Below, one piece after another: positions 721 to 26,669 of a stretch of 44,392 nt of DNA. Made by a program: the position numbers and the translations under genes. This stretch comes from Macrostomum lignano (lineage: Eukaryota), in contig NIVC01003072.1 of the NCBI GenBank assembly GCA_002269645.1, positions 1 to 44,392 on the forward strand, in the 5' to 3' direction. The notes under the pieces were generated by a model. That model saw nothing but the letters and a program-made list of their open reading frames with translations, was not told the origin of the DNA and did no database searches. Every line of letters begins with the position of its first letter. Within the stretch, counting starts at the first letter, position 1.

Positions 721-2351
721 TGAGGTTCTGCATCTCATTTCTCATTTCTCAAAGCTCTCATTTCTCTTGTTTGTAACGGAAGCCACTCTCAGCCCTACTC
801 AAGTTGAAACGAACGCCTTTTGTTGATAATAAACTGTTCTGTTTGTCCCATTCAAAAATAATCTATTTCTGATCATCAATTCCAGCCTGAGTGATCTTGA
901 AATTCTATTATTATATTTTATTTTTCTGTTTCACGTTTGGATAAATGATCAATTGCAATATCGTACATTGGTAACTATTTGGCTTTTTGCTGCAATGAAT
1001 TGCACAAAGCGTATCTAAGCTGCTAAAAACGTGAGATTAATACTCACTGAAACTGTGGCAATCGGTATTGTTCTATTAATCAATATTTTTTGGTTGAATT
1101 GTTTTTTCTATTGTGTTTGCTTCTGTGGTTTTTGGTAAAATCTGCTTCTGCATCCTGCATATTTACAGGCATAAACTGGCCGTATAAGTATACAGACCCT
1201 ACTTGGGTTTTTCATTCTTAATAAACAATTTTTGGGACTTGAAAATCAATATGTTCTCTTACGTTTGTATTAAATTAACAAAAAATCTTATCTTTTGTTT
1301 GCAAACGTAAAATTATTTTTAATACTTCAGTTGTCCATTAATATATATGATGGATTTAAATTATAACTTAATATAAATACAACGAGAATTTTGCTTATAG
1401 TGGGCGAATACTGTATAGGAATTATTGATACTCTTATCAATAATCGCTGTTATTTTTACGATTTACAGTGTACAGTCATGGCCACGGGAATTAGGAACTG
1501 ATTTCCCGCGGGATTCCCACGCGGTCATTCCCGGGGAATCACATTTGATTGGCTCGCTCCACCCACCCCCACCGAGACGCGACCCTCTGTTGTGTGTCAC
1601 CCTATATATTACCCCTCATTATTCTACTCCTCTTGAAAGATCCAACAGGGCATAAAAAATGGCACTCGGCGCCAAAAAGATCCATTTCACCCTTTAGGTT
1701 GGCGCTTGGGGGGCACAGTTGGAGTTACAATCCCAGGAATTCAGAACACAATATTTTTTAACTTGCAGACAATGAGACTTCACAGCGGCAATCAGAATAT
1801 GCCTTCATCAAGATGCAGCGATGGAAGCAGATTTTGTCCGAGCGAGCACGGCGGCAGTGCGTGACCAAGACGAACCGGCTGGGGGATTTCTCAGTATTGG
1901 CACTCAGAGTGACAACACTGAACTGAAAGAGCCGTCCTGTGAAGAAAAGGAAAGTGGGCGTGACCTCCAGAGACGGGCCATCTGCAACTCAGTGGGCAGC
2001 TAACAAGATAAAAAAACTACGGCATCAGAATGCTGGATTTCGTCCTTTTCGTTCCGTACATGTACAGATGTACGTTAAACTAAATAATGAAGACAATAAA
2101 AGTTGAACTCATCTCATTAGGAATGCAAAAGAACAAAGATACGTGGACATGTATTTGTTTATTTCGCATATTAGAACAGTTCAAATCCAGTTCTATACGG
2201 GAACACGAATGAACTCTATCAAACATTATTTAGCAATATAATTAAACAATAAACTGTTGGCTTATTATAACAAGAATAGAATTAAGGAAAGAGAAAATTT
2301 CGTTGCTGTAATTATTAATTAATAAATATAGTTGAGCGTTTGAACCTTAAT

Positions 2352-3461
2352 CTACGCCTTGTGCCCATTGATCTCTGTGCCGTTTCGCCTGTAGAACTCG
2401 GACTGAACGATGCCGACGCGGCAATGCGCCCGATCCGGGGGGTCCAGCTGATTCGATAGCCGCTTGCCGTACACAGACGAGTAGAGAGTCGGTACCGGCT
2501 TTGAAATTTCCTGGAAATATCGTTATATCCAGGAACCGTGTTAAAACGGATCATCAACGTACCAAGCCGTTAAAATGTAATTATTTGCAGTGTAAATGTT
2601 TTGAACTTATAAAGTTCACTACTAGCCGTTACAAAACATTTAAATTACCTCCTGATGCACTTGGAGGCCTTGAGACTTTGCATGCTCCCTGTCGTCTCTG
2701 TGCAGCTTGGCATTGAAATCGCGCTCCTGGTGAAAAATCCTATCGTAGCCATAGGCCGAGTAGCGTTCCTGTGGGATGGGCGGTAAAGGCAATAGCTAGG
2801 GTGAGAGAGGAAATGTATTGAAATTTTAATCTATTTTTACTGTATACTGCGCTGCATCTAAGGTAGTTGTAGTCTTCAATTTCGCCTTTCCTTTATTTAT
2901 ATATCATCTATTTTCAAAGTCTCGTGGGTTTTAAAATAAAAGTAAATCACTTAAAACTGACAAAAAATTTACCAACTCTATATTATTTCGTCTGTTCTAA
3001 CTTTAGAGGGTTTAAGCCAGTATTACTTTAGGACAGCTGGGCATATAAAATGCTTATATATGGTCTGGAAGCTACTTTCATACTAGTGGCAAACAGGGGC
3101 GTAGGGAGGGGGGGGGATAAGGGGGGATGTATCCCCCCCCGAAGAGCCTGACCAAAACTTTTTTGTTGCCCTTTGTTGCTATACATGATACCATGTGACT
3201 CTGTCATAGCACTTTTACCTTGGTGTATCCCCCCCGTAGAAAATTCACCTTGGTGTATCCCCCCGTAGGAAATTCCTGGCTACGCCCCTGGTGGCAAAAT
3301 CTTACATTTTTATCTACGTTGAAATATGTACGTTCCCTCGGTGCATGGCGCTCTGGAGGGACAAAAGAAAATGAGGAAAGCTCGCAAGGGCGACCTCGCA
3401 AGACGAATTCGTCAGTATCCGTCTTTACGGGAATAACAAAATCGCTTTGCTCTTCTTCCAT
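2352..3461 (-). CDS. CFAP90: CFAP90/C5orf49-like cilia- and flagella-associated protein, about 144 aa, 3 exons
   Basis: Exons (-): 3461..3306, 2768..2649 (alternative acceptor 2795), 2510..2352, all phase 0, GT-AG. Translation includes LRGRPCELSSFSFVPPERHAPRERTYF, YDRIFHQERDFNAKLHRDDREHAKSQGLQVHQE and SSVYGKR...QSEFYRRNG. These match the C5orf49 motifs I recall (KLHRDDREHAKSLGLHV, SSVYGKR, FYRKN). Confidence 0.9.
3094..3290. mobile_element. Non-autonomous hAT-type MITE (197 bp) in CFAP90 intron 1
   Basis: TIRs CAGGGGCGTAG (3094) and CTACGCCCCTG (ends 3290); 8-bp TSD GTGGCAAA at 3086-3093 and 3291-3298. Confidence 0.9.
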
Positions 3462-3861
3462 TAGGAGCTTTGCTTCTCTTGTCAGTAGGAAAATACAAAG
3501 ACGCTGGTATAGATCAAACCGATGATTTGATTTTGTATATAGCCGAAAACATATTCAAATTTTAAACTGAATAGGAGCGACACTATTAGCTACAACAAGT
3601 AAAACAAAATCTTCTGAACAAAATTACTTTGCCCTTAATTCTATAGTAATAGCGCAAGTATCAAATAAATAAAAAGTTTTTTGATATAACAGATTGAAAA
3701 AAGAACAAATTTATGTAAGTATTTTTTTGTTTGGGGGAACGATTTCAAGTTTAATAAGACCCAAGAATGATCTATAGCTCACGGACTGTAAGGTAGTCTA
3801 GCAATTTTGGATACTTTGCGTGTGTTTAAAAATAAGACTACTAGATACTTTTTAAGAGGAA

Positions 3862-6800
3862 ATGAGCAGAAATTTTCCAACTTTGCAAGAGAAAGTTGGT
3901 AACGCTTCTTCGAGGTAATCTAATCTTCAATGTTTTTCATTTTAAGATATTCGTGTACTCCATATAATAAAAATGGTTTGTCGGTAGGTATCTATCTAGG
4001 TATGCGATCAATTTTACCTCTCTACTAAACATCCAATTTTTAGACATATGTTTTGTTTATTTGTCGACTGTTGCTTTTAAAAGGCTCGTACATCATTTAA
4101 GAAGAATTTACATTACTAACATTGTCTAGTCATTAAGTGCAGAACATCAGAATTCATATGGCATGTGCTAAACAAAAAACCTTATTAATATTACTTTTGG
4201 TCAACTGGTTTAAAATATAATTGTATATTAGTTGTCACTAGGTAATATATATATATCGATTTTTTATTTTATCAGTAATAGCTTTAATAATTGCAATAAT
4301 GCTTTTATAGCATTTTGTTTAATATCTTTGCTTTAGGTTGTTATGCTATTTATCAATAACTGCCATACCTTCTTAGGAATAAAAATTACTGAAAATCAAT
4401 TCTAACTTTTCCTCTTAAATTATGCACTTAAAGCTAATTTTCTAATTATGATTTAGCATAGAAAACTAAATTAAAAGTTAGACATTTTGCTTTGCATGGC
4501 TATCAAAATTAAAATGAAAGAAGTCTTTGAAAAAAAGCTATTTTTGCATTCAAAACCCAAATCAAGATCTGTGCAAGACCGCGTCAGCTCAGTGAGCCAA
4601 CGAGAGGCCCAAAATGTTCTTCGACTTCGCGTCAATCGAGTCTGCCTTGTACAGCAGCTCAATGTAGATCCCGTGGTTGATTACCTGAGACGTGAAGGTA
4701 TTCTCAGCGACACCGATGTTCGCTTCGTGTCCCGCGGTGCCAACAGGTCTGAGAAGACGCGAATGCTGCTTGACATGCTGCCCAGCAAGGATCCCAGCAC
4801 CCAGTGGTACAACAAGTTCAGGTGGGAATGTGAGCTGCAAGTATTGCCGAATGAACGCCCTTCTGTTCTTCGAATCTCTATTCTGAGAATCGCCCTCAAA
4901 TCTCTATTCTGAGAATCGCCCTCAAATCTCTATTCTGAGAATCGCCCTCGAATCTCTATTCTGAGAATCGCCCTCGAATCTCTATTCTGAGAATCGCCCT
5001 CGAATCTCTATTCTGAGAATCGCCCTCAAATCTCTGTTCTGAGAATCGCCCTCAAATCTCTGTTCTGAGAATCGCCCTCGAATCTCTATTCTGAAAACCA
5101 GCCCCCTAGATCTAATCTGGACCAGAGAATGGCCCTCTAGATCTAATCTACACCAGAGAATGGCCCTCTAGATCTAATCTACACCAGAGAATGGCCCTCT
5201 ACATTTAATCTGCACCAGAGAATCGCCCTCTACATTTAATCTGCACCAGAGAATCGCCCTCTAGATCTAATCTGCACCAGAGAATCGCCCTCTAGATCTA
5301 ATCTGCACCAGAGAATCGCCCTCTAGATCTAATCCACACCAGAGGAACCTCTAGAGCAAGCGATCTAGAAGCAAAGTCCCGTCACCTACCCAGGACGTCT
5401 CTATCGGCAACATCCACCGTCGACGCCACCACCGCTCGGAATCATCAAATCCTGGTTGACTTTCTAGACAGCACAAATCTAGCCAATCTGAAATCGAGTT
5501 CCACAGACTCAATGCAACACTCTGAGCAGCAGCAGCAGCAGCCGCCGCTGCCGCCGATTCAACCTCAAGAAGACGATCCGACGTCTGCAGAGCATCGTCA
5601 GCGTTGGAAGGCGCTACGCTCGGCGGCCAAGTCCAGACTGAGTCAGCTCGAAGCCAATCCGTCTATTCGATTGAGTCGCCTACCGGAGGACTTGCCCGAG
5701 CACCTGGCTCGAACTTACGAAGCCTGGACAGCTAACGGCGGCAGCGGTCGCTCCGCGGCCAAGCACGAGCGTCGATGCCTGTCGCGACTGCGAACCGCCG
5801 ACGAGTTCGCCTTGCAAGCCGCCGGTTCGGCCAATCCCGAACGACTCATGCTGGTCTGCTTCATTTCGCCGCTGCACCGTCTGCTGTGCGACATTCGCAA
5901 GCGTCATCTGGCTTATAAATACTTACTAGCCGATGCGCCTAGCCTTGGCAACGCCATAGCAACCGCGTTTGCTAACTTATCTACCGGGCCGGACGGTCGA
6001 CGACTTTTCACCGACGGTCGATGGTCGCGGTACGCGGCTACTAAGCTGGCAAATTTGGCCGGCCGACTGTTCGACTTTCTGGCCGGAGTCAATCTGTTTA
6101 GAGAGTGCGAGACAGTTGCCGGGTCTTTGTGCGACTATCTGAATAGGTGAGGCTGCTTAAGTATCTGAGCTGTCTGAAGTAAAACTTGTTTCACACGTTG
6201 TTAGTGTAACGCTCGGCGATCTAGTGATAAAATAATTCCATCACAACATCCGATGACTATGACCGACGGTGACATTCATTTGGGGCTTTTGTGCTAAAAT
6301 TAACAAAATTTTGGGTAAACGGCAGGAGTAACTATGACTTGATTTTTAAGGCTAAATGTCTCAGTACCTAATTAGTGCTATGTCTATTTTTGGGTTGGCA
6401 TTTTTGTGACTTACCTTGGCTAAGCCCCTCGCCAGGGTGTTGCACATGTATGGCCATGTTGCCATTTTATTACATCCATGTGACACACAAAGCCACCATA
6501 GTCTCTGTGACACAAGCGACTGTATATAACTCTCACTAATCTCCTTGAAAAGGTTCGGCGGCGACTGCGTGGAAGCCCTGCTGCCAACCTACCGCGCCAG
6601 CGTCAGGCTGATGGAAGCCCGGCTCAACAACGCCGACTACCAGCTGGCCGACGCTGCCAGTCAGGCGGCACAGGCCACGGCGGCCAGAATCAACCGCTTG
6701 TCGTTTGGCCAAAAAGTGATGGACAACCAGGCCCTGCTGCAGGCACAGATTGGTCGGATGCTGCTGGACCAGGGTAGCCTGGCGTCCGCGTTGGGTGCTT

Positions 6801-9800
6801 TTGGTAGCGCCATCTCGGTGAGTGCATGCTAATTTGTTTTTAGATTTTTTAGAATATGCAAGCATAAGAATATTAATTGATTAATTATTTGCCAGTGCGG
6901 GCCTGCAGAGTTTTCTTTTATTAAACAGGATTCATTATTATTTGTTTTACTTATAGTTTTAAATGATAAAATAAATGATCAATAACTCTATTAAATATTT
7001 AGGTATAGATAATTTTTTATTACGTTTTATTAATATTAAAAAAATAATTAAACGAAAAATAGTAAGTAAAAATTTAAATCAAAATGACTTTTTATTGAAT
7101 TAAAATTGTTAATTATACATAAATTGAGTCGTCTCTTGAGTAAATATAGAAAAGATTTCTTTTATACTTGAAAAATTTAATAAAATATCAATTTTAGACT
7201 GTGGATCTTAATGATACAGAGGCCGTCTTCAAAATTCTCTACCACGCTTTGCAACTTTACCTAACAAATTCCGATGAAGGAAAAGCGGAAAAATTAGCTG
7301 TTGCTTGCGTACAGCATGCTTAGTAAGTACTTTTTTGTAATTTCCATACCCGCTTGACTTAATATTAACATAAATTTTAATTTATTATTATTTCAGCAAA
7401 TTTTACAAAACAGAATCGCCGGAATACATCAAGTCGTTGTTAAACTTTGTCAAATTTTCAAACGCTTTCTGTCAAGATGATTTTGGAGTCGAAGTTGCTG
7501 TGGTAAGTTTGGTCACGGGTGTGCAAAGTTTTATTTTCTAGTGTTTGGAAATATTTCTCTAACATCCCTAGAAAACTATTTGGTCTCATATGTATGAAAA
7601 ACGAATTTTATTTTTACTGTATCGAAATTTATACGATGTCATTCTAAGAAGGAAACAAACCAAAGTCAGAAAATTTAGTTTTTTTAAGTAATAGTTATTT
7701 TAGTGTAATTTTTTTAGCTTTTAAGTAAGTAATTCGGTGCAATCTTAAGTATCTCATGGTTTAAAAACCATGTCAGTATCTTAAGATAGTCTGATGTAAA
7801 TTTTAAATAAGAATCGATTTGACATTGTACCGCCCTTCGTTCGAGAAACTTTCATTAACCGTATTAATCTAACATTCTAGAAACCATGCACAAATCCAAA
7901 TGTCGCGATCTTTGCAGAAGTTTATCTTCACCTAATAATATTCTACGAGCTAGTTTCAAGCATTTATTAATGAATACTAAATTATGTACTATAGTAAATA
8001 GTATAGTAAACGTCCTGGATATAGCATAGTAAATATCTGTGTAATTATCTGTAAATTAATCAGCACGTTAAATTTGTTATACTGTAGAAAATATTTTTAG
8101 AACTTTCTCGAAAACCAAGTCATATCTATAAATATACGGCAGGCGCATCGTCATATCTTTATCTTCCCCATTTTCTTTATTCGTTCCTAATACACCAATA
8201 AACAAAGGAACCACTGATTTCATTTGCTGACGAATGCTAACATCAATCCAACTAATTCCGCCAATGTCGTTCTGTTCTAACAAAATATAATTTTTAGATT
8301 ACACCTAATTCTTAGAAAATATCGCATCAGCTAAAAAACTTCGTTCTTTTCGTAAAAATTGGATCTCATTCTATAGGAAACTTATTCTCTCTTTCTAGGA
8401 AAAATCAATTCCGTTTCTAAGGCTAATTCTCACCTCATTCTTATAAAATTTAATAAATTTCCTATCCATCAAATTCCAGAACGCATCTTTATTCGCTCAG
8501 CTCATCCTGGGCTACCAGCACCCGCTACTAGCCGAAGTCCAGTCGCACCTGTCGTTGGCGCAGCTTCTACGGCTCCGTCATCGCAGCCGCCGCGGTCAGG
8601 GTGCAACTGCGGAGCCCCAAGAAGTTGTCGCTCACGTGGAAGCTTCTCTAGCCGCAGTCAGAATGAGCTCTGGCGAGTCGGCATCTCAGCATCCCAACGC
8701 TGCCTCCTTGATGACTAATCTAGCCCAAGCTGCTCGCCTAGCGAACCCCGCCATCCTGCCAGTTGAACTGCTTCAAGTCGCCATCGAATTCGGTAGAAAA
8801 TCTGTTGAAATTCTCTCGAATACCATCGGTCGGCACAGTCCGGCAGCTGTGCAAGCCAGAATCTGTCTGGGCAGACTTCTGGCCGATGTGCCTTCGGGGA
8901 GTACCGTCCGGAGGCTGAGCGGCTGGCTGATGAAGCTCTAGAAGCGCTGATTGACAGCCAACCAGCTCAAGGGCACCTGCTGCTCAGAGCTAAACTCCAG
9001 TTGGCTAAGTAGGCCATTTTTTAGTCTGTCAGATTTTTTATTCTGAGATTTTGAGTCTGAAATTTTTGAGTCTGAGGTTTTGAGTCTGTGAGATTTTGAG
9101 TCTGTGAGATTTTGAGTCTGGGTGATTTTGAGTCTGAGATGTTAAGTCTGGGATTTGGATACTGAGATTTTGAGTCTGTGAGATTTTGAATCTGGGAGAT
9201 TTTGAATCTGGGAGATTTTGAATCTGGGAGAGTTTGAGTCTGGGATTTTGAGTATGAGATTTTGAGTCTGTGAGATTTTGAGTGTGAAATTTTGAGTCTG
9301 TGAGATTTTGAGTCTGTCAAATTCTGAGTTTGAGATTTTGAATCTGGGTGATTTTTAGTCTCTGAGATTTGAGCCTTTGAGATTTTGAATCTGAGAGATT
9401 TTGAATCTATGAGATTTTGAATCTGGGAGAGTTTGAGTCTGGGATTTTGAGTCTGTGAGATTTTGAGTCTGGGTGATTTTTAGTCTCTGAGATTTGAGCC
9501 TTTGAGATTTTGAATCTGGGAGATTTTGAATCTGGGAGAGTTTGAGTCTGGGATTTTGAGTATGAGATTTTGAGTCTGTCAAATTCTGAGTCTGGGATTT
9601 TAAGTCTGTGAGATTTGAGTCTGGTTGATTTCGAATCTATGATATTTTGAGTCTGATATTTTGAGTCTGCTAGTCACTGCATGAGTCTGTCAATTTTAAT
9701 TGTTTAACTCGGCTATTAGATCAACATTTGGTAAACTTGGGTCATCTAATTGAGATTCAATAATTTAAATACTTTTTTCATCTCTAAAGGCTGCACCGAG

Positions 9801-12800
9801 CCGCCGGCAATCCCAAACGAGCCCTTGCCCTGGCCAATGACGTCATCGAACAGACTGAATGCTACGGCTCTTATATTCGATGGCTAGACCAGGCCTACAT
9901 TCTCGCTATTGAGTTGCTAAGCGAGTCCAAAGACTTGGCTGAAGCTGCTGCTGCAACGACGACAAGCGATGAGATGATGGCTAAACGGCAAGATTGGCTG
10001 AGCAGGCATCCGATGTCGCGGTCTGCTCAGGGCCTGGATTGGGCCGCTTTGCACGATCGACCCGACAAAGAGTTCTTTCGGCGATTCCGGGCCTGGGGCG
10101 ACGACAGGAAGGAACTGGTGAGGCAGGTCGCTGCCGCCGCAGCCGCTGCCGCTGCCACCACGGCAGATGGTCAGGGAGCTGAAGGCAGCAAAACTGAGTG
10201 AGTTTGAGCGCGCTCTAAACAGCTCTACCCTGGTCTGATTCTGTTAGAATGTGTTTTCACTCTGTGAATCAAGGTGTCTAGTTCGGTTAAGAACGTGTCT
10301 AGTTCGGTTAAGAACGTGTCTATCGGTTAAGATCGTGTCTAGTTCGGTTAAGAACGTGTCTAGTTCGGTTAAGAACGTGTCTATCAGTTAAGATCGTGTC
10401 TAGTTCGGTTAAGATCGTGTCTAGTTCGGTTAAGAACGTGTCTGGTTCGGTTAAGAACGTGTCTGGTTCGGTTAAGAACGTGTCTAGTTCGGTTAAGAAC
10501 GTGTCTAGTTCGGTTAAGAACGTGTCTAGTTCGGTTAAGAACGTGTCTAGTTCGGTTAAGAACGTGTCTAGTTCGTTTAAGAACGTGTCTGGTTAAGAAC
10601 GTGTCTGGTTAAAAACTCACTTTACCAAACATTCTTTTCAGACAAAATAAAGTCAAAGCAGCTCAAAACCCAGAGTCCAGAACTGCTGTTGACGGATCCG
10701 AGACGGCAGCTGAAGCAAAACAGCAACGCGTGATAAAATGTGCGATTTCTTTCAGTTTAAATTAAAAATATTTGTCCTTAAAAGGCTTTTTATATTAAGA
10801 AATCATCTTGTTTATCTTTAATTCCACAGTGCTGCTCATAGGCGATTCCGGAGTCGGGAAATCCTGCCTGTTGCGCAGATTTGCTGAAAACTCATTTGAC
10901 GAAAGTCAAAACGCGACGCCAACAATTGGTGTGAACTTCAAAATTGTTCAAAATGAAATCGATGGGTCAAGCATCAAGTGCCAGATCTGGGACACCGCTG
11001 GACAAGAGAGGTGATTCCTTGCATTTTTACTTGTGCGCACTTGCCTCTGATCAACCCCGAATCTCTACCCCCTAATGTACACTTATCTCTTACCTACCCC
11101 ATTCAATCTCTACCCCTCCAAATGTACACTTGTCTCTTATTAACCCATTCAATCTCTACCCCTTCCAAATGTACACTTGTCTCTTATCAACTCATTCAAT
11201 CTCTACCCCTTCCAAATGTACACTTGTCTCTTATCAACCCATTCAATCTCTACCCCTTCCAAATGTACACTTGTCTCTTATCAACTCATTCAATCTCTAC
11301 CCCTTCCAAATGTACACTTGTCTGACCAACCCCATTCAATCTCTACCCCTCCAAATGTACATTTGTCTCTTATCAACCCATTCAATCTCTACCCCTTAAT
11401 GTACACTTTCCTCTGACTTCAACAAAACTCCAGATTCCGCACAATAACATCATCCTACTACCGAGGCTGCGCCGGCGCTCTGCTGGTCTTCGACGCCTCG
11501 AACCGCGACAGCTTCGACAGCTGCGAGCGCTGGCTGCAGGAGCTGCGGGCCTCCGCGCCAGAGTCCGTGCACGCGGTTCTGGTGGCCAACAAGAGCGACT
11601 CGGATGAGGCCGCCGTGACTCAGGAGGAGGCTGACGAGTTCGCCAAGTCGCACGGCATCGAGCTGTGCTGGGGCGTCAGCGCCCGCACCGGACAGAATGT
11701 CGGCCAGGCATTCAGGGGCCTGCAGAGTCGGGTGCTGCAGAGCAAAGTTGATGGGTTAGTTATTGAGCTACCGAAGGTTTCAGAATAGAAAGCATTGCAA
11801 CACTATAGTCTCGCATAGCAACACGCTAGTCTCGCATGGCAACACGATACTCTCGCATGGTAACCAAGAACTTAGGGTTTCGCCTTCCCACAGACTGAGT
11901 TCAAATCAGGCTCCAATGAATTCAACTGACATGCGACAATTGCCTCAGTTGGTGCCTAAGAAAAGTGAAAATTCTAACGAACATATTGATTATCAGATAA
12001 AAGGTAAGCAGGATTGAACTTTTTTATTGTAGAAGGTAAAAATAAAGAATTATTGTATTACGCTCATTCAATTTATCATTCAGTTCTTCTAATTGGCGAC
12101 TCCGGTGTTGGAAAGTCCAGCTTGCTTCAGCGATTTGCAGACAAAGAATTTGATGCCACTAACGAAATGCCACAAACCATTGGAGTGGAATTTCGAGCTG
12201 TGAAAGACAATATTGATGGCTGTCGAGTCAAGAGTGTGTTCTGGGACACAGCTGGTGCGGAGAGGTAAGTTTGAGATGGAATTACGCTAACCTGAGAAGG
12301 CTTATATGCTAGACAGAGGCCTCACACCTGTTAGACTGGGGCTTCACACTTGTTAGACAGAGGCCTCACACCTGTTAGACTGGGGCTTTACACTTGTTAG
12401 ACAGAGGCCTCACACCTGTTAGACTGGGGCTTCACACCTGTTAGACAGAGGCCTCACACCTGTTAGACTGGGGCTTCACACCTGTTAGACAGAGGCCTCA
12501 CACCTGTTAGACTGGGGCTTCACACTTGTTAGACAGAGGCCTCACACCTGTTAGACTGGGGCTTCACACTTGTTAGACAGAGGCCTCACACCTGTTAGAC
12601 TGGGGCTTCACACCTGTTAGACAGAGGCCTCACACCTGTTAGACTGGGGCTTCACACCTGTTAGAGAGAGGCCTCACACATGTTAGACTGGGGCTTAACA
12701 CCTGTTAGACAGAGGCCTAACACTTGTTAGACAGAGGCCTAACACTTGTTAGACAGAGGCCTCACACCTGTTAGACTGGGGCTTCGCACATGTTAGACAG

Positions 12801-15800
12801 AGGCCTCACACCTGTTAGACTGGGGCCTCAAACCTGTTAGACAGAGGCCTCCCACGTGTTAGACAGAGGCCTCACACCTGTTAAACAGTGGCCTCACACC
12901 TGTTAGAGGCCTCACACCTGTTAGACAGAGGCCTCACACCTGTTAGACTGGGGCTTCACACTTGTTAGACAGAGGCCTCACACCTGTTAGACAGAGTCCT
13001 CACACCTGTTAGACAGAGGCCTCACACCTGTTAGACGGAGGCCTCACACCTGTTAGACAGAGGCCTCACACCTGTTAGACAGAGGTCTCACACCTGTTAG
13101 ACAGAGGTCTCACACCTGTTAGACAGAGGCCTCACACCTGTTAGACAGAGCCTCACACCTGTTAGACTGAGGCCTCACACCTGTTAGACTGGGGCTTCAC
13201 ACCTGTTAGACTGGGGCTTCACACCTGTTAGACAGAGACACCTGTTAGACTAGGGCCAAACCCATCCATAAATTACCCGACATCCGCAGGTTCCGCTCCA
13301 TCACGAGCGCCTACTACAGAGGCTGCGCCGGCGCTCTGCTGGTCTTCGACGCCTCGAACCGCGACAGCTTCGACAGCTGCGAGCGCTGGCTGCAGGAGCT
13401 GCGGGCCTCCGCGCCAGAGTCCGTGCACGTGGTTCTGGTGGCCAACAAGAGCGACTCGGATGAGGCCGCCGTGACTCAGGAGGAGGCTGACGAGTTCGCC
13501 AAGTCGCACGGCGTCGAGCTGTGCTGGGGCGTCAGCGCCCGCACCGGACAGAATGTCGGCCAGGCTTTCAGGGGCCTGCAGAGTCGGGTGCTGCAGAGCC
13601 AGAGCCAGCAATTCGGGTTGGTGTCTGGCCTTTGCAACAGCATTTAATCCCTTTAGCTATACATTCTCATCGTCATAGCAACACAACGTCATTCACATAG
13701 CAACAAAACTTCGTCCCCATGGCAGCACAACCTCAAACACAGCAACACAACTTCATCCCCATAGCAACACAAATTCATCCCCATAGCAACACAACTTTAT
13801 CCGCATAACAACGCAAATATTTTCTCTTTAAAACCGATTCCTAGTTTGGCACAGACCCAGCAGTCAAACGAATCGACTACTTTCGCTCCGAAGGCCATCA
13901 ATACGAGTAAATCTACTGAGCAGTCGAAGGAGTCTCCCATTTCGAAGCCAGCAGCAGTGGGACAGGCAAACCTGAACGATGATCGCTCTCCTGACTATGT
14001 GATAAAAAGTGAGATATAGCATCCTTGTCTTTACCATCTGACTGTTACGTGGGTGCGAAGTGAGATGGATATGCGGAGTGAGCTGGGTGCGGAGTGCGGC
14101 GGGTGTGGAGTGAGGTGGGTGTGGAGTGCGGCGGGTGTGGAGTGAGGTGGGTGTGGAGTGAGGTGTGTGTGGAGTGAGGTGGGTGCGGTGTGAGGTGGGT
14201 GTGGAGTGAGGTGGGTGCGGAGTGCGGCGGGTGTGGAGTGAGGTGGGTGTGGAGTGAGGTGGTGTGGAGTGAGCTGGGTGCGGAGTGCGGCGGGTGTGGA
14301 GTGAGGTGGGTGTGGAGTGAGGTGGGTGTGGAGTGCGGCGGGTGTGGAGTGAGGTGGGTGTGGAGTGAGCTGGGTGTGGAGTGAGCTGGGTGCGGAGTGC
14401 GGCGGGTGTGGAGTGAGGTGGGCGCGGGGTGAGGTGGGTGCGGAGTGAGGTGGGTGCGGAGTGAGGTGGGTGCGGAGTGAGGTGGGCGTGAAGTGGGGTG
14501 TGTGTGGAGTGAGGTGGGTGTGGAGTGAGGTGGGTGTGTAGTGAGGTGGGTTCGGAATGAGGTGAGTGCGGAGTGAGGTGGGTGCGGAGTGGAGTGAGGT
14601 TCGGAGGTGGGTGCAGAGTGAGGTGGGTGCAGAGTGAGGTGGGTGCAGAGTGAGGTGGGTGCAGAGTGAGGTGGGTGTGACAATGCTCACAATGCCCACA
14701 CCCACACGCAGCGGTGCTAATCGGAGACTCCGGCGTCGGCAAGTCCTGCCTGGTCCGCCAATTTATTGACCAGGAATTTGACGAGAGCCTCAAGGCAACG
14801 CCCACCATCGGAGTGGACTTTCGCGTGGTGAACAGCGACATTGACGGGTCGCGAGTGAAAACTCAGATTTGGGATACGGCAGGACAACAGAGGTGAGGTT
14901 GAAGTTGGATAGCTCGCTCTTTCCTTTATTAACTTTATTTCTGGACGAAATTGTGTTATAAAACCCATTAGATTTACACATAAGTTACTATCATTAACTC
15001 ATTAGACAGCAGGGACCTTAACACCTGGATCATAATAACTGAATCATGAATCTAGGCTCATAAACCTATATTAAAACACCGGAATCATGACACTCAAATT
15101 ATAAATCTTGGATCATAATTATCTGAATCATAACACCTCGATCATTACACCTGGATTATAACACCTGGATTATAACACCTGGATTATAACACCTGGATTA
15201 TAACACCTGGATCGTACCACCTGGATCATAATACCCGGATCATAACACCCGGATTAGAACACCTGGATCATAACACCTGGATCATAACACCTGGATCATA
15301 ATACCTGGATCATAACACCTGGATCATAAAACCTAAACCATAACACCCCTTAGACCGCCCTTCGCCCCTCCCCGACATCCGCAGGTTCCGCTCCATCACG
15401 AGCGCCTACTACCGAGGCTGCGCCGGCGCCCTGCTGATCTTCGACGCCTCGAACCGCGACAGCTTCGACAGCTGCGAGCGCTGGCTGCAGGAGCTGCGGG
15501 CCTCCGCGCCAGAGTCCACGCCCGTGGCTCTGGTGGCCAACAAGAGCGACTCGGATGAGGCCGCCGTGACTCAGGAGGAGGCTGACGTGTTCGCCAAGTC
15601 GCACGGCGTCGAGCTGTGCTGGGGCGTCAGCGCCCGCACCGGACAGAATGTCGGCCAGGCTTTCAGGGGCCTGCAGAGTCGCTGCCTCGCCCAGATGAAG
15701 CTTCAGAAGGCGGAGACAGCGCCGAAGGCGGCCAACGCGTCAATACGGATAGCAGAGATTGACAGCATGCTGGCGAGTGTCAAAGATATGAGTTCGTCGA

Positions 15801-17795
15801 ATTTCGATTCGAAAGTTTTGTCCAGATTCACCGTTGACAGTCAGCGGCAAAGCGCGCCGCCAGGTGCCAGCGTGGAGGAGCTGCCGTTGATTGAGTCCCA
15901 GACTGCGTCTGTGCCCGACAGGCCTGCTGTGCTCGTCAATGGTGATCTTGGGCGATTTTTAGGGCTTTTAAATAAGACACAAATGGCGCCAAACTAGACA
16001 CAAATGGCGCCAAACTAGACACTAAAGGCGTCAACCTAGACACAAATGGCGCCAAACTGAACACAAATGGCGCCAAACTAAACGATAAGAATCGATGGCG
16101 CCAAACAACTTTACGAGTATGTTTACCAATGATTAAACCGATCAACTCCCGCAGTAATCGTTGTTGGGAACGCTGGCGTTGGCAAGTCAAGCCTTCTGGC
16201 TCGCTTTGTAGGCGGCCAATTCAACGAATCGTATGCGCCGACAGTGGCCGCGAGTCTGCAGAGCCGACTGGTCAAGGTTGACGGGGTGCCGGTCCAATGC
16301 CAGATTTGGGACACTGCCGGTCAGGAGAGGTGAGGAGATTTTGACGTTCGCACGGTGGTGCGCGAAGGGATGTGTGGAGTGAGGTGGGCGCGGGGAGTGA
16401 GGTGGGTGCGGGGAGTGAGGTGGGCGCGGGGAGTGAGGTGGGTGCGGGGAGTGAGGCGGGTGCGGGGAGTGAGGCGGGTGCAGGAAAGTGGGGTGGGTGC
16501 AGGGAGTGAGGTGGGTGCAGGGAGTGAGGTGGGCGCAGGGAGTGAGGTGGGTGCAGGAAGTGAGGCAGCTGCAGGGAGTGAGGTGGGCGCAGGGAGTAAG
16601 GTAGGTGCAGGGAGTGGGGTGAGTGCAGATTGAGGTGGGTGCAGAGTGAGGTGGGCGCGGGGAGTGAGGTGGGTGCGGGGAGTGAGGTGGGCGCGGGGAG
16701 TGAGGTGGGTGCGGGGAGTGAGGTGGGCGCGGGGAGTGAGGTGGGTGCGGGGAGTGAGGCGGGTGCGGAAAGTGGGGTGGGTGCAGGGAGTGAGGTGGGT
16801 GCAGGGAGTGAGGTGGGCGCAGGGAGTGAGGTGGGTGCAGGAAGTGAGGTAGGTGCAGGGAGTGAGGTGGGCGCAGGGAGTAAGGTAGGTGCAGGGAGTG
16901 GGGTGGGTGCAGATTGAGGTGGGTGCAGAGTGAGGTGGGCGCGGGGAGTGAGGTGGGTGCGGGGAGTGAGGCGGGTGCGGAAAGTGGGGTGGGTGCAGGG
17001 AGTGAGGTGGGCGCAGGGAGTGAGGTGGGTGCAGGAAGTGAGGTAGGTGCAGGGAGTGAGGTGGGCGCAGGGAGTAAGGTAGGTGCAGGGAGTGGGGTGG
17101 GTGCAGATTGAGGTGGGTGCAGAGTGAGGTGGGTGCAGGGAGTGAGGTAGGTGCTAACAAAGTCCACCGCCATTACTCCCAGCCATCGCAGCAACTCGGA
17201 GGGCTACTACAGCGGCTGCCAGTGTGCTATGCTGGTCTATGACGTCACTGACGCGGACAGCCTCCGCGACTGCGAGGCCTGGCTGCAGCGACTGCGCCCG
17301 GCACAGGACGGCGACAGCGTCGGACTACCAGCCGACGCCCCCATCGCTCTGATCGGCAACAAGCTCGACCGCCGCGAGCTCCCTACGCCCTCCGGAGCTC
17401 AGTCCGGCCTGGCGCTGGCTCGGCGCCACGGCCTGGTTTGGCGCGAGGCAACGGCGCTAGACTCGGAGAGCGCCAGCGAAGCGTTCCTGTGCCTGCTGCG
17501 CGCTGTTCTACAGACCATGCATTCGCCAGAACAACTTCGGGATGCGGATTCTAAGAAACGCAAAGGCGAAAAAAACGCTAGCAGACGAAAGCGAAAGTCG
17601 AAGCAGAAGGCAAGAAACAGCGGTCGCGATGCCGCCGCCAAAGTTTCCGCCGTGAGGTTTGGCGGCACGGCGACGCTGACGGAATTTCCAGGCGTCGGAG
17701 ACAACGCGGCGACCACCCAAGATGACGACAATGAGGCTGCCTGGACGTCGGACTCCTCGCTAAGCAGCAGCAGCTCGGCCGAGTCAGCTGAGTAA
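3862..17795 (+). CDS. Predicted multidomain protein, about 1,800 aa: CARD - APPBP2-like TPR region - four tandem Rab-like GTPase domains (19 exons)
   Basis: Exons: 3862-3914, 4567-4821, 5394-6146, 6553-6817, 7198-7322, 7397-7502, 8480-9008 (needs +1 G at 8896-8899), 9790-10197, 10642-10739, 10830-11010, 11434-11754, 11894-12003, 12084-12264, 13290-13616, 13845-14008, 14712-14892, 15385-15941, 16155-16329, 17183-17795. All introns are GT-AG with matching phases; total 5403 nt including the corrected base. Exon 1 and the 10197/10642 junction are the least certain parts. Confidence 0.7.
4567..5480 (+). CDS. CARD (death-fold) domain, exon 2 plus start of exon 3 of the multidomain gene
   Basis: [66 protein letters not shown]|TSL...[10 protein letters not shown] follows the CARD consensus (LxxxRxxLvxxL.v..vlDyL...gvLs......I......r..k.r.LLd.Lp.kg....F). 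Confidence 0.85.
4868..5340. repeat. Compound intronic minisatellite: 26-bp unit, then 31-bp unit sharing the core GAGAATCGCCCTC
   Basis: Tandem CTGAGAATCGCCCTC(A/G)AATCTCTATT to about 5095, then CCAGAGAATCGCCCTCTAGATCTAATCTGCA. Confidence 0.95.
5590..10197 (+). CDS. APPBP2/PAT1-like TPR region (exons 3-8 of the multidomain gene)
   Basis: Collinear similarity to human APPBP2 as I recall it: RLSRLPEDL~IRSLPENI; [11 protein letters not shown]~KVLRALDKRHL; [16 protein letters not shown]~VRLLHVRNGNCKYHLG; [31 protein letters not shown]~KAEQLIKHAVYLARDHFGSKHPKYSDTLLDY; [17 protein letters not shown]~SVFGGKNIHVATAHEDL. Confidence 0.7.
6290..6452. mobile_element. Degraded relative of the CATACATGCGCAAC MITE family
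   Basis: Contains TTTGGGTAAACGGCAGGAGTAACTATGAC, identical to 28643-28671, and ends in GTTGCACATGTATG (6439-6452), a TIR variant. Left end and TSD not recognisable. Confidence 0.7.
9035..9690. repeat. Intronic minisatellite, about 10/19-20 bp units (GAGATTTTGAGTCTG(T/G))
   Basis: Tandem periodicity within intron 9009..9789. Confidence 0.95.
10263..10610. repeat. 21-bp minisatellite (GTGTCTAGTTCGGTTAAGAAC)
   Basis: Tandem periodicity. It fills the predicted intron 10198..10641 and explains ORF 10396..10596. Confidence 0.95.
10830..11754 (+). CDS. Rab-like GTPase domain 1 (exons 10830-11010 and 11434-11754)
   Basis: [22 protein letters not shown]|[19 protein letters not shown]. Resembles Rab1/Rab35-type sequences. 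Confidence 0.92.
11065..11410. repeat. 47-bp intronic minisatellite (CCAAATGTACACTTGTCTCTTATCAACCCATTCAATCTCTACCCCTT)
   Basis: Tandem periodicity in the intron splitting Rab domain 1. Confidence 0.95.
12084..13616 (+). CDS. Rab-like GTPase domain 2 (exons 12084-12264 and 13290-13616)
   Basis: [22 protein letters not shown]|[19 protein letters not shown]. Linked in frame to domain 1 by exon 11894-12003, which ends HIDYQIK|V. Confidence 0.92.
12312..13255. repeat. 22-bp minisatellite with two alternating variants (CACACCTGTTAGACAGAGGCCT / CACACCTGTTAGACTGGGGCTT), a 44-bp higher-order repeat
   Basis: Tandem periodicity in the intron splitting Rab domain 2. Confidence 0.95.
13670..13815. repeat. 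Short degenerate CATAGCAACACAA repeat; a similar short array lies at about 11805-11865
   Basis: Repeated CAT(A/G)GCAAC core in the introns after domains 1 and 2. Confidence 0.7.
14085..14680. repeat. G-rich minisatellite (GGAGTGAGGTGGGTG(T/C))
   Basis: Tandem periodicity. Source of the PHS/PT-rich spurious ORFs. Confidence 0.95.
14712..15690 (+). CDS. Rab-like GTPase domain 3 (exons 14712-14892 and start of 15385-15941)
   Basis: [22 protein letters not shown]|[19 protein letters not shown]. Linked to domain 2 by exon 13845-14008, which ends PDYVIK|T. Confidence 0.92.
15085..15345. repeat. 14-bp minisatellite (GGAT(T/C)ATAACACCT)
   Basis: Tandem periodicity in the intron splitting Rab domain 3. 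Confidence 0.9.
15975..16105. repeat. 21-bp minisatellite (AAACTAGACACAAATGGCGCC)
   Basis: About 5 imperfect tandem units in intron 15942..16154. Confidence 0.85.
16155..17795 (+). CDS. Rab-like GTPase domain 4 (divergent) plus basic/Ser-rich tail (exons 16155-16329 and 17183-17795)
   Basis: [23 protein letters not shown]|[20 protein letters not shown]. Followed by [21 protein letters not shown]; ends [10 protein letters not shown] with no C-terminal Cys. Confidence 0.88.
16372..17152. repeat. G-rich 18-bp minisatellite (GGGAGTGAGGTGGG(T/C)GC(A/G)) with higher-order blocks
   Basis: Tandem periodicity in the intron splitting Rab domain 4. Confidence 0.95.
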
Positions 17796-21667: not shown

Positions 21668-24600
21668 TCAATCATCCTCATCTCCGGCCTCGTTGTCTTC
21701 GGCGTCTCCACCGCCGCCTTCATCCTCGGCGTCGGCATCGGCAAAGTGCAGCACAACAGCCTCATCAACCTCTTCATCGGCGGCTTCCTTAGTGCCCCCC
21801 TGATCCCCATCGTCGCCAAGGAAATCCCACACTAAGATAGTATCGTCGTGGGACGATGAAACGATCTGAAATTCGTCGAATTGCAAGCGGAACACCCTGC
21901 CAGAGTGTTCGCTGAGTGTGACGATGCACAGCGCGTCGGCCGACGATCTGGGGTCAAGGGCGGCCTGCAGGTCCCACACTTTGATCTTGCCGTCGTAGGC
22001 GCCAGACACAATTCGTTTGGAGTCGAAACGGATGCAGCGGACCAGCTCTTCGTGCCCTGCAGGGGGATTAAGATAATAACTATCGTATCGGGAGGTGCCT
22101 TTGATGTTAACAGAAGAAGGTTCAATGAAAGTGGGGAGGTGCCTTTGATGTTTACCGAAAAAGGTTCAATGAAAGTGGGAAGGTGCCTTTGATGTTTACC
22201 GAAAAAGGTTCAATGAAAGTGGGAAGGTGCCTTTGATGTTTACCGAAAAAGGTTCAATGAAAGTCTGAAGGTGCCTTTGATGTTTACCGAAAAATGTTCA
22301 ATGAAAGTCGGGAGGTGCCTTTGATGTTTACCGAAAAAGGTTCAATGAAAGTCGGGAGGCGCCTTTGATGTTTACCGAAAAAGGTTAAATGAAAGTCGGG
22401 AGGTGCCTTTGATGTTTACCGAAAAAGGTTCAATGAAAGTCGGGAAAGTCTAGAGGTGCCTTTGAATTTTGCCGAAAAAGGTTTAATGAGAGTCGGGGTG
22501 CCTGGTGAAAGGTTCAATAAAAATCGGTCCGTTGATGCTTACCGATAAGGGTTCAATGAAAGGTTGGGGCGGCGCCTTTGAAGTTTGAAGTGAATCTACA
22601 GTTTCAAACTTACCATTGAGCACTCGCAGACAGATTCCGCTCTCGATATCCCACAGTCTGATAGAATTATCAGACGAGCCGCTAACAACCAGATTATCGC
22701 GATACTGCAAACAGGCGATGCCGCGCTTGTGACCGCTCAGGGTGCGCACAAATTCGCAGCTGGCAGTGTGCCAAACTTTAATAGTCCTATCGCCGGAAGC
22801 TGACACAATGTAGCGCGAATCGAAATCTACAACATTCACGGCGGCTCGGTGGCCTACTAGAACTCGTCTAAGCGCGATGTCGCTAGGCGAGTGCATGTCC
22901 CACACGGCTATGGATCTGTCCTTGGAGCACGTGACCATCAGGCCGTCGCAGAAGCGCAGATGGAGCACGGCCTCGCAATGATGATACAGTGTGTTCAACG
23001 GTTGGCCAGTGCGCACGTCCCAGACCCGCACTGTGCTGTCTGAGGAGCCGCTAATTATTATGTCATCGTCGTATTGGAGGCACAGTACGGAGCCCATATG
23101 GCTGGATAGCACCTGGTTTGTGTGATAATTGTATGATGGGGATATCGGTAAGGGAGATGCATTCACTAATCCCATAGTTTGATACTGATCCCAATTGATA
23201 ATCCCCTCGAGTGAGTAATAATCCCAATTGATAATCCTCTTTTGTGGTTAATAATCCCAATTGATAATCCTCTCTTGTGGTTTATAATCCCAATTGATAA
23301 TCCTCTCTTGTGGTTTATAATCCCAATTGATAATCCTCTCTTGTGGTTTATAATCCCAATTGATAATCCTCTCTTGTGGTTTATAATCCCAATCGATAAT
23401 CCCCTTCAGTGATTAATAATCCCAATTGATAATCCTCTCTTGTGGTTTATAATCCCAATTGATAATCCTCTCTTGTGGTTTATAATCCCAATTGATAATC
23501 CTCTCTTGTGGTTTATAATCCCAATTGATAATCCTCTCTTGTGGTTAATAATCCCAATTGATAATCCTCTCTTGTGGTTTATAATCCCAATTGATAATCC
23601 TCTCTTGTGGTTTATAATCCCAATTGATAATCCTCTCTTGTGGTTAATAATCCCAATTGATAATCCTCTCTTGTGGTTTATAATCCCAATTGATAATCCT
23701 CTCTTGTGGTTAATAATCCCAATTGATAATCCTCTCTTGTGGTTTATAATCCCAATTGATAATCCTCTCTTGTGGTTTATAATCCCAATTGATAATCCTC
23801 TCTTGTGGTTTATAATCCCAATCGATAATCCCCTCCAGTGATTAATAATCCCAATTGATAATCCTCTCTTGTGGTTTATAATCCCAATTGATAAACCTCT
23901 CTTGTGGTTTATAATCCCAATCGATAATCCCCTCCAGTGATTAATAATCCCAATCGATAATCCTCTCTTGTGGTTTATAATCCCAATTGATAATCCTCTC
24001 TTGTGGTTTATAATCCCAATCGATAATCCCCTCCAGTGATTAATTATCCCAATTGATAATCCCCTCTTGTGTTTTTATAATCCCAATTGATAAAATAACC
24101 TAAATCGATAATCACCTACGATTTTTTTGATTTGAATCCTCTACACAAAGATTAATTCTATATTATTATCCCCATTCCGAATCCCTTACCTTAGTACACT
24201 CCAGAGATTTACGATCCCACACTTTGATGGTGTTATCCCTTAGGCCGCTAATAATCTTGTCCTCGTCGTACTGCAGGCAATAAACTCCTTTGGAAGATTC
24301 GCTTCGGCATTGAATTCGACGCAATTTAAAACTGCCCTTGGCCCAGTTGCTCTCGATTCGCCTGATGTCGCTGAGAATCTTCGGGTACAGCTGCCTGTAG
24401 TGGCTGTCTGAACTGCCGACGTCGCTCTCCGCTCCGTCTCGCTGCGGCCGGCGCAGGTCTCGCAGCCAGCCTCTGCGGACGGCCAGCCCGCGCCACAGAT
24501 TGCTTCTGCGCACCTGCAAGCAAATTTTAAAGTACAGTGCGGTTTGTCTGGTTTGCCCAGCAACTGGGGATCTGGGAGGCTGGCCCAGCAACTGACACTC

Positions 24601-25578
24601 TGGGAGGCTGGCCCAGCAACTGACACTCTGGGAGGCTGGCCCAGCAAGCAGCAACTGAGGATCTGGGAGGCTGGCCCAGCAACTGACACTCTGGGAGGCT
24701 GGCCCAGAAACTGATCTGGGAGGCTGTTGGCCTAGCAACTGAGGATCTGGGAGGCTGGCCCAGCAACTGGGGATCTGGGAGGCTGGCCTAGCAACTGAGG
24801 ATCTGGGAGGCTGGCCCAGCAACTGGGGATCTGGGAGGCTGGCCCAGCAACTGACACTCTGTGAGGCTGGCTCAGCAACTGGGGATCTGGGAGGCTGGCC
24901 CAGCAACTGAGGATCTGGGAGGCTGGCCCAGCAACTGGGGATCTGGGAGGCTGGCCCAGCAACTGACACTCTGTGAGGCTGGCCCAGCAACTGGGGATCT
25001 GGGAGGCTGGCCCAGCAACTGAGGATCTGGGAGGCTGGCTGGCCCAGCAACTGAGGATCTGGGAGGCTGGCCCAGCAACTGAGGATCTGGGAGGCTGGCT
25101 GGCCCAGCAACTGAGGATCTGGGAGGCTGGGCCAGCAACTAGGGATCTGGGAGGCTGGCCCAGCAACTGAGGATCTGGGAGGCTGGGCCAGAAACTAAAC
25201 AGTTGCTAACCAAATATTTGAGTCCCCAAAGTCAATCCTCTCAACGCTCACCTGCGACTCAATCAGCTTACGCCACAGCAGGCCCTCAGATACAACCCGT
25301 CGCCACTCGCTGCACACCATCTCAGCAGAGGCCAGAGATTTTGCATCCAAACAGGCCAAGATTCGCTCAGCCAAATGATCCAAGCCACATGTTGGCAGTA
25401 CACTGATAAAGTCTCGCTGCAGCATGGGAGCTAAGTATTCCTGCACTTGGCCATGCTGATAATGCGACATACTGCCCAGTAACTGTTCAACAAAGTTCAC
25501 CTGTTCCATTTCTGACCAAGTGGAGAATTGCTCCAAGCAGACTGACTGCTCAGACAGAAATTGTTCAGACAGAGACAT
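21668..25578 (-). CDS. BTRC: beta-TrCP (F-box/WD40 protein; BTRC/FBXW11/slimb orthologue), about 512 aa, 4 coding exons
   Basis: Exons (-): 25578..25252, 24513..24190, 23112..22614, 22056..21668, GT-AG, in phase. D-domain ([14 protein letters not shown]...HYQHG), F-box ([17 protein letters not shown]), seven WD40 repeats ([43 protein letters not shown]). An additional upstream exon is possible (AG acceptor just 5' of EKAKYIM). Confidence 0.97.
22090..22560. repeat. 44-bp intronic minisatellite (GAGGTGCCTTTGATGTTTACCGAAAAAGGTTCAATGAAAGTCGG)
   Basis: Tandem periodicity in the last beta-TrCP intron. Confidence 0.95.
23183..24100. repeat. 33-bp intronic minisatellite (TATAATCCCAATTGATAATCCTCTCTTGTGGTT)
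   Basis: Tandem periodicity. Explains ORF 23440..23841 ([11 protein letters not shown])n. Confidence 0.95.
24553..25192. repeat. 28-32 bp intronic minisatellite (CTGGGAGGCTGGCCCAGCAACTGAGGAT)
   Basis: Tandem periodicity in intron 24514..25251. Confidence 0.95.
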
Positions 25579-26669
25579 GATGTACTTGGCTTTTTCTGGT
25601 ACAGCATAAATTCCAAGGTGCAGTATAGAGGCACATAGTTTAGTGTTCCAAAGGATGATACAAGTATAAAGAAATGAAAATTTTATCATCTATATTATTC
25701 AATTGTTTTATGTTAGCTATTATTGTAATTATATTATTAATTACAGATTGGAAAATGATTATTAATTCATAAAATTGAAAAACATCTAAACATTAGACTC
25801 TTAATGTTAGTCATATTTTAATTACTATTAAAAAAACCAGTTGTGAGTTTTTACTAGATATATATCATATTCTGGCTTAATTAAAATCTTTATCAATAAA
25901 TAAATAATTATAAAAATAACTTATGTACTATATTACACTACTATATAGTTAGTATATTTTCAGTTGAATGAGCATATAATAATATAGTTTGAATGTCTTT
26001 ATATTTATAGTTAGTTTGAAAAGAGTTTGGGAAATACTTTAAATTTGTAAGACCTGGGGCTATATAAATAATATTTAAATATTGGCGCAATTTTTAGTTT
26101 AGAGACATTGGCATTTTAGAATAAGAGCATCTTACATCTAATTCCTAGTAACCTAATATCTATTCTAGGTGGCAGTGTTAGGCAAAGTAAAAAATAAACT
26201 AGATAAAAATTTGGGATTGACCAACTATGATTTTTTCTTTTGTGCATGATTAGAACTAGACAATGCATGAAACAATGCATGACCATGAATTTTTTAACAT
26301 ACATTTTAAATTAGACATAGAACTATTTGTTTTAATACTACTAAGTCTAGCAATTTGTATTGATTTTTAAGCTTTGTTTTATTAAGTTTATTGTTTTACC
26401 ATATTTTATTATGTGGCTTTGTTATATCTATGCTGATTTGTAACAATTTTGGTTTGCTTTTCACAATCATATATTTTAGAATATTGTGCTACGACTTAAA
26501 AAGTAAGGTTTAAATCAGGAAATTCACAAATTATGATTGGCAATAGACAATATGTGATTTTTTTCCTCGTAATCATAGTTTTCATGATTGTGACTAAGCC
26601 TACAATCACAGTCAATCTCCAATAAAATGCTAAAATTAATAATTAAAAAAAATTTATATTAATAATAAT

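Follow-up and report, generated by a model that had tools for sequence, protein, structure and literature searches.

A gene on the + strand of a 44,392-nucleotide stretch of Macrostomum lignano DNA (hereafter the window) encodes a CARD, a linker and a long array of helical repeats that a preliminary description, made from the letters of the sequence, had likened to human APPBP2. APPBP2 is normally a single-copy and extremely conserved C-degron receptor, and the locus raises the question of what such a scaffold does when it carries a CARD. Cryo-EM work has described APPBP2 as the receptor through which a Cullin-2 RING ligase recognises RxxG C-degrons (PDB 8JAL/8JAQ; PMC10614623). We find that the ~600-residue alpha-solenoid of the window protein is a true, very diverged APPBP2 homologue, made up of VHL-box-equivalent helices and 11 TPRs. 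For the gene as a whole we favour, with moderate confidence, a three-module architecture of CARD, diverged APPBP2 solenoid and Rab domain, in which the gene belongs to a CARD-APPBP2-like paralogue family and its product would be a non-catalytic adaptor.

Homology of the solenoid to APPBP2

The exon model was built from two annotated proteins, P0001 (BOX15_Mlig018981g1) and P0002 (BOX15_Mlig031168g2), together with the splice signals in the window. It consists of 11 exons between 3862 and 11788, with GT-AG boundaries at all ten introns, and predicts a product of ~1,040 amino acids. The spliced translation is 100% identical to P0002 and 98% identical to P0001. The preliminary description had placed the gene at 4567-10197. 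Position 4567 is the exon 2 acceptor (aatcaag/ATCTGT) and position 10197 the exon 8 donor (AACTGA/gtgagt), and the range thus covers exons 2-8 precisely but leaves out exon 1 (3862-3914) and three Rab exons (10642-11788).

Comparisons that started from few sequences gave a weak signal for APPBP2. The human APPBP2 query was identical to PDB 8JAL chain A over 585 of 585 residues. A phmmer search of the PDB with the single window protein returned no APPBP2 at E<=10, a result that we later judged to be a false negative, and pairwise BLASTP against human APPBP2 gave one colinear match of 145 amino acids (23% identity, E=2e-4). With a two-sequence profile, hhalign assigned APPBP2 a probability of 11%; this profile was replaced by one of 12 CARD-family sequences, which was compared with a profile of 18 APPBP2 orthologues. 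When the 12-member profile was searched against the PDB with hmmsearch, APPBP2 was matched at 1.2e-45 over residues 40-574, and the next TPR protein was kinesin light chain at 1.5e-5. Aligned with the 18 orthologues in hhalign, the family profile gave a probability of 99.95% (E=1.1e-37, 528 columns), and in global mode the alignment extended to APPBP2 residue 1 with E=6.9e-54.

The structural comparison led to the same protein. An AlphaFold2 model computed on the exact P0002 substring reached a mean predicted local distance difference test (pLDDT) score of 82.4 and a predicted template modelling (pTM) score of 0.75. In a Foldseek search of this model against the PDB, the top four matches were APPBP2 chains (E ~2e-11, target-normalised TM 0.71, ~630 columns), followed by generic TPR proteins from 2e-5 with TM 0.5 or lower. 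Across sequence profile and structure, APPBP2 is therefore a better match than other TPR proteins by 6 to 40 orders of magnitude. Kinesin light chain, through its TPR domain, ranks next among the TPR relatives of APPBP2 and of the CARD family alike, but the match covers only ~190 residues, at E ~1e-5, with a generic likeness of the TPR_12 type. A profile search giving nothing but generic TPR hits had been named as a result that would refute the assignment; when run, both the profile search and Foldseek showed similarity specific to APPBP2. Pfam was undecisive, since it holds no APPBP2-specific model and the entry that it places on APPBP2, PF24885, is TPR_NPHP3.

The claim that the translation aligns with APPBP2 from start to end thus holds at the level of profile and structure, with the N-terminal helices included. 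APPBP2 (PAT1) has the same layout of three N-terminal VHL-box helices, an 11-TPR superhelix and C-terminal helices. Compared to APPBP2, the window protein adds an N-terminal CARD with its linker and, in Macrostomum, a Rab domain. Human APPBP2 indeed has no CARD according to Pfam, as the preliminary description had stated for the vertebrate protein.

The original call of a CARD stands. Residues 38-106 match Pfam CARD (PF00619) with E=3.5e-9 and 37 bits, well above the gathering score of 23.9, and the AlphaFold2 model shows a helical bundle. Helices in the CARD region of the model span 2-11, 13-19, 22-31, 37-44, 49-62, 69-82 and 85-100, with pLDDT values of ~85-93. In single-sequence and profile searches of the PDB, the nearest CARD of solved structure is that of RAIDD.

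A CARD-bearing family and its altered binding sites

An exhaustive phmmer search with the mid-region of the protein against 1.84 billion representatives recovered 20 relatives. Those with names measure 790-860 amino acids and come from Owenia (an annelid), Lingula (a brachiopod), Tubulanus (a nemertean) and the molluscs Lottia, Babylonia, Physella, Bulinus and Plakobranchus. Their alignment with the flatworm sequence runs from the CARD through the C-terminus, and 10 of the 12 family members compared have a Pfam CARD match (best E=3.2e-12), the other two being N-terminally truncated fragments. Apart from the two Macrostomum proteins, a further protein search using the family profile yielded only bacterial TPR/CHAT proteins.

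These proteins are distinct from APPBP2 proper. Canonical APPBP2 is 57-66% identical to the human protein across protostomes, and in Lingula, Tubulanus and Lottia (P0082, P0092 and P0093) it measures 577-584 amino acids with 63-66% identity to human. The same three genera also carry the CARD form (P0124, P0126 and P0130) at 810-860 amino acids. The window protein has ~17% identity to APPBP2, compared to at least 57% among bilaterian orthologues, and one-to-one orthology is thereby rejected. Since the CARD form occurs beside canonical APPBP2 in Lingula, Tubulanus and Lottia, it appears to be an old spiralian-wide family and not a Macrostomum invention. The earlier view of a lineage-specific protein has to be narrowed accordingly: the combination of CARD and APPBP2-like solenoid is present in at least five spiralian phyla, and it is the Rab tail that is restricted to Macrostomum among the 12 members. 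Proteins combining a CARD with an APPBP2-like solenoid define a previously undescribed paralogue family across Spiralia, which we term CARD-APPBP2-like.

Existing database records do not set this family apart. For the CARD forms of Lingula and Plakobranchus the NCBI pipeline has assigned the name 'amyloid protein-binding protein 2', and members are otherwise labelled 'APPBP2 isoform X1' or 'CARD domain-containing protein', all as automatic predictions. A literature search on CARD plus APPBP2, on CARD-TPR adaptors of such a kind and on the locus tags found nothing relevant.

The modules of the family have been conserved unequally. The CARD is the best-conserved one, with 43% pairwise identity compared to 28-31% for the TPRs, whereas canonical APPBP2 shows the opposite pattern, its TPR6-11 being almost invariant. 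The Q/P linker, which the preliminary description had noticed and which we place at ~5521-5574, carries a conserved PLPxI motif. In its fuller form, P-x-Y-x-P-L-P-x-I (~5545-5562, PPLPPI in the window), the motif has L, P and I invariant in 12 of 12 members, and the linker around it is unconserved. On this pattern the motif may be a docking site for some partner.

To compare the degron-binding surface, the APPBP2 residues listed in PMC10614623 were mapped through the profile alignment. The RxxG pocket is formed by Y338, Y341, V342, Y345, R380, L384, E387, E388, N434, R437, S441, Y468, L472, H476, S479, Y483 and Y515 (PMC10614623). All 17 are invariant in the 18 APPBP2 orthologues, and none of the 17 is conserved across the CARD family. 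E387 and E388 fall within a deletion in the family, and the window protein coincides with APPBP2 only at R380 and R437. Because the residues of the RxxG C-degron pocket have been replaced throughout, the binding specificity of the solenoid has probably changed. APPBP2 further forms a Zn-mediated dimer through C54 and H89 (PMC10614623). This pair is also lost in the CARD family, C54 being Pro in 11 of the 12 members and the H89 position being variable.

The remaining functional site of APPBP2 is the BC box, and it is here that a rival to the adaptor reading has to be weighed: a working Cullin-2 RING ligase receptor whose VHL-box-like helices bind Elongin B/C and Cul2 while the CARD recruits a caspase or Apaf-1 for ubiquitination, or whose ligase activity is switched on by CARD oligomerisation. 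We looked in the VHL box for a BC box of the form (S/T/P)-L-x-x-x-(C/small or hydrophobic)-x-x-x-(hydrophobic). The preliminary description had paired the window segment RLSRLPEDL with APPBP2 IRSLPENIQ, but this register is wrong. RLSRLPEDL falls on APPBP2 helix 1, and we rejected it as the BC box because the profile alignment places the BC-box helix at 5776-5808 (+), opposite APPBP2 S34-LPENIQFDV-Y44, with S34-L-P-E-N-I-Q-F-D-V43 giving the register. The KRHL motif at 5899-5910 (+), also pointed out earlier, does align with APPBP2 K75-R76-H77-L78; of its residues the CARD family retains H and L, K and R being found only in Macrostomum.

Part of the BC box has been kept. L35 (L/F/V) and D42 (D/E) are conserved in the family, most members have hydrophobic residues at positions 41 and 43, and a hydrophobic residue stands one position earlier (+3) than position 39, so that a hydrophobic face of the BC-box helix persists. 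The APPBP2 N-terminal region with helices 1-3 is moreover alignable and predicted to be helical, all of which is consistent with a ligase receptor. Human APPBP2 is insoluble without Elongin B/C (PMC10614623), which suggests that the fold needs that partner. Other features argue against Elongin binding. Position 39 is I/V in 18 of 18 orthologues but R/Q/K in 12 of 12 CARD forms; P36, Y45 and Y48 are lost; and the box of the window protein reads L-SRL-R-TAD-E, with I39 changed to R and V43 to E, although the helix is present in the model. Loss of C54 from the Zn dimer points the same way, and a Pfam scan gave no SOCS-box or VHL-box match at E<=10. Since the central residue of the BC box is R/Q/K, Elongin C binding is unproven. 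Overall, we regard the ligase receptor as a tentative alternative, and on these residues continued coupling of the solenoid to Elongin B/C-Cul2 as an E3 would be possible but is doubtful.

Gene structure, the Rab tail and copies of the locus

The order of exons bears directly on whether the modules belong to one protein. Exon 1 (3862-3914, +) supplies the start codon and the first 17 2/3 codons and ends at the donor TTCGAG/gtaatc. Residues 1-18 of P0001 map to it with 100% identity, and a start codon at 4496 was rejected in its favour. Exon 2 (4567-4821, +) encodes CARD helices 1-5, the Pfam CARD match beginning at ~4625. Intron 2 (4822-5393, +), which is packed with minisatellite repeats of ~26-31 nt, then splits the CARD, and the acceptor at 5394 alone recreates the annotated junction WYNKFR/TSLSAT. 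Exon 3 (5394-6146, +) completes the CARD with its final helix and the LVDFLD(N/S)T motif, invariant in the family, and continues through the Q/P linker and a helix specific to Macrostomum into the APPBP2-like domain, of which it encodes the VHL-box-equivalent helices and the first TPRs. By family alignment, hhalign and AlphaFold2 secondary structure, the final CARD helix with this motif runs to ~5478 and the APPBP2-like domain begins at ~5653.

The downstream exons complete the solenoid. APPBP2-like TPRs are encoded by exon 4 (6553-6817, +), which lies inside the BLASTP match to APPBP2 residues 154-294, and by exon 5 (7198-7322, +). Exon 6 (7397-7502, +) holds the block of highest conservation, whose counterpart in APPBP2 is RDHFGSKHPKYSDTLLDYGFY; this block is 45% identical within the CARD family and shares KAExL...FG..HP.Y..LL with APPBP2. 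Exon 7 (8480-9008, +) is the counterpart of APPBP2 TPR6-9 and contains a 1-nt frameshift that is discussed below. Exon 8 (9790-10197, +) covers the remaining TPRs and the C-terminal helices, together with a tail rich in Ala, and alignment with APPBP2 stops at ~10087.

At the end of exon 8 the donor GTGAGT (10198-10203, +) overlaps an in-frame TGA at 10199-10201. We rejected this TGA as an obligatory stop, because of that overlap and of in-frame splicing into the Rab exons: P0001 and P0002 both splice it out and read ...SKTE/QN... across the junction. Exon 9 (10642-10739, +) is a linker with no in-frame ATG. Exon 10 (10830-11010, +) begins the G domain with the P-loop GDSGVGKS, the switch regions and WDTAGQE, and exon 11 (11434-11788, +) supplies the remainder (RFRTIT, YYRG, NKSD and SAR) up to a TAG at 11786-11788. 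Together the three exons encode a Rab1/8/35-like G domain (Rab1A at 1.5e-47 against the PDB; Pfam Ras at 5.9e-48 on P0001) with the G1-G5 and RabF motifs intact. The whole Rab part contains no methionine and therefore has no translation of its own from an AUG. No C-terminal CC/CXC prenylation motif was seen in the read-through C-terminus of exon 11, and no Ras-family domain was found in any of the other CARD-family members among the 12 compared. From the position of the donor, retention of intron 8 would yield the ancestral two-module protein, the architecture of other spiralians, and its removal would let the frame continue.

The Rab exons are the first of four tandem Rab1/8/35-like units at 10642-17795 (+), of which unit 1 is fused with the CARD gene. 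In unit 2 (~11916-13680, +) a separate exon with its own ATG stands in the place of exon 9, and the catalytic Gln has been replaced (WDTAGAER). Unit 3 occupies ~14600-15997 (+); unit 4 (~16130-17795, +) has diverged and carries a long tail rich in Lys and Ser. That unit 2 has an ATG-bearing first exon where unit 1 has exon 9 suggests capture of the first unit of a downstream Rab cluster by the CARD gene.

It might nevertheless be that the CARD, the APPBP2-like and/or the Rab parts belong to different genes and were fused only in annotation, which relies on transcripts in a genome rich in operons and trans-splicing. The GenBank models derive from transcripts and have visible flaws: the tail of P0002 is frameshifted, and the end of P0001 is a repeat that has been exonised. 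M. lignano employs trans-splicing, and three more free-standing Rab units follow in tandem, one of them with its own ATG exon. However, exon 3 carries the final CARD helix along with the Q/P linker and the beginning of the APPBP2-like domain, so the fusion is not an artefact of joined neighbour genes, and the same fusion of CARD and APPBP2-like domain has been predicted independently in other spiralian phyla. For the Rab part, the absence of Met from exons 9-11, the canonical and in-frame splice sites, the overlap of donor and stop, and the conservation of this structure in a homeologous copy all speak against it. We consider such an artefact improbable.

That copy, L001 (NIVC01003072.1), is called here the homeologous locus, and L002 (NIVC01000483.1), on a contig of the GenBank Mlig_3_7 assembly, the GenBank copy of the window locus. 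L001 has the same exons and splice sites as the window, the exon 8 donor included. Between window positions 1596-14865 and L002, identity is 99.36%, with 29 substitutions and 21 indels over 13.3 kb, differences which indicate that the window comes from another assembly or haplotype.

The two copies also bear on how the frameshift in exon 7 should be read. At 8896-8899 (+) the window has GGGG and the frame is broken, whereas L001 and L002 both have GGGGG with an open frame. Taken at face value, the broken frame would mark the window copy as a non-functional, decaying pseudogene. The G-run is, however, the sole indel between the homeologues in a coding sequence of 3.1 kb that has no other stops; all splice sites are intact; and 23 synonymous and 27 non-synonymous changes separate the homeologues, which puts omega at roughly 0.4. 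The frameshift is thus most likely, on this comparison of copies, a homopolymer assembly error or an allele and not a sign of gene decay, and we hold a pseudogene to be very unlikely.

The annotated C-termini need separate treatment. The C-terminus of P0002 is frameshifted by an indel of the GenBank contig that is not found in the window. A ~300-bp repeat occurs at 26669-26966 of the window and at 17706-18004 of L001, the two being 94% identical. In L001 it sits just past the Rab exon and encodes the last 31 residues of P0001 (FIHAQQ...KCPPKK). These repeat-derived residues were rejected as part of the window locus, where the repeat lies at 26669-26966. Since the repeat is missing after the Rab exon of the window, the C-termini differ between the two copies.

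Introns in the window are AT-rich and dense in minisatellites. In the CARD gene and in Rab unit 2, many introns are each filled with a different array of 20-45-nt units (4840-5340, 9020-9680, 10260-10610, 11040-11400 and 12300-13260). Upstream, at ~2350-3540 on the - strand, lies a gene annotated in L001 and L002 as a CFAP90-family member (PF15074). Beyond the Rab cluster, the window contains a beta-TrCP/FBXW11-like gene (21668-25689, -; Beta-TrCP_D at 2e-18, F-box and WD40 repeats) that has the same position in L001, and a Tc1/mariner-type transposase (HTH and DDE_3) in two open reading frames at 28007-29290 (+), probably a decayed copy. A gene for an SLC1/EAAT-type sodium:dicarboxylate symporter follows at 35850-40524 (-; Pfam SDF at 9e-10), and very long simple minisatellites in its introns give rise to spurious open reading frames of 270-290 amino acids.

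Proposed role and significance

We propose that the protein would act as a non-catalytic adaptor. Its CARD would dock it onto CARD proteins through homotypic CARD-CARD contact; in flatworms the partners would be caspase-2-type caspases or Apaf-1. The APPBP2-type superhelix would offer a second binding surface, of changed specificity, to a different ligand, and capture of the Rab domain in Macrostomum may have added a GTP-switch or membrane-targeting module. CRADD and FADD are both missing from platyhelminths, where Apaf-1 and a CARD caspase of the caspase-2 type occur (PMC11463336), which makes the CARD adaptors of this phylum of interest.

Several points weigh against this adaptor reading or some part of it. 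The family alignment is shallow (12 sequences, with an effective number of ~3), and the mapping of residues in the C-terminal TPRs may shift by a few positions. The polar centre of the BC box argues against an E3 role, and the three preserved N-terminal helices argue that some partner was kept. If exon 11 is read through, the Rab part lacks a Cys for prenylation, and support for the junction 10197>10642 comes from two loci annotated in GenBank together with sequence logic. A separate trans-spliced Rab mRNA may exist, though it would be AUG-less, and the frameshift at 8896-8899 could be a real null allele.

The adaptor proposed here has parallels among known proteins. CRADD/RAIDD and other small CARD adaptors follow the same logic of joining a CARD to a second protein-binding module, but where CRADD/RAIDD has a death domain for this module, the window protein has a TPR solenoid of the APPBP2 type. 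Large Rab GTPases (Rab44, Rab45/RASEF and Rab46/CRACR2A) are long multi-domain proteins with a C-terminal Rab, and ROCO/DAPK-type proteins pair a death-fold domain with a Ras-like (Roc) GTPase. Those proteins carry EF-hand/coiled-coil or LRR/COR/kinase modules; here the modules are a CARD and an APPBP2-like solenoid, and no prenylation motif was seen. A more far-reaching possibility is that spiralians own a second, CARD-armed Cullin-2 receptor of the APPBP2 type, one that ties death-fold assemblies to ubiquitination or is activated by CARD polymerisation, the Macrostomum version being a three-module CARD-TPR-GTPase signalling protein whose logic would resemble that of STAND or ROCO proteins, though its parts are unrelated to theirs; we think this unlikely.

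The family is a sister family of APPBP2, unrecognised so far, that has kept the APPBP2 fold, lost the degron pocket and gained a CARD. It offers a natural experiment in which the APPBP2 scaffold has been released from RxxG recognition. The Rab fusion in Macrostomum is a 'Rosetta-stone' hint that the family may act together with a Rab-type GTPase and, M. lignano being a laboratory flatworm model, knock-down of the gene could be tried. The CARD-APPBP2-like proteins stand as a clearly delimited candidate for a new node in the cell-death or innate signalling of spiralians.

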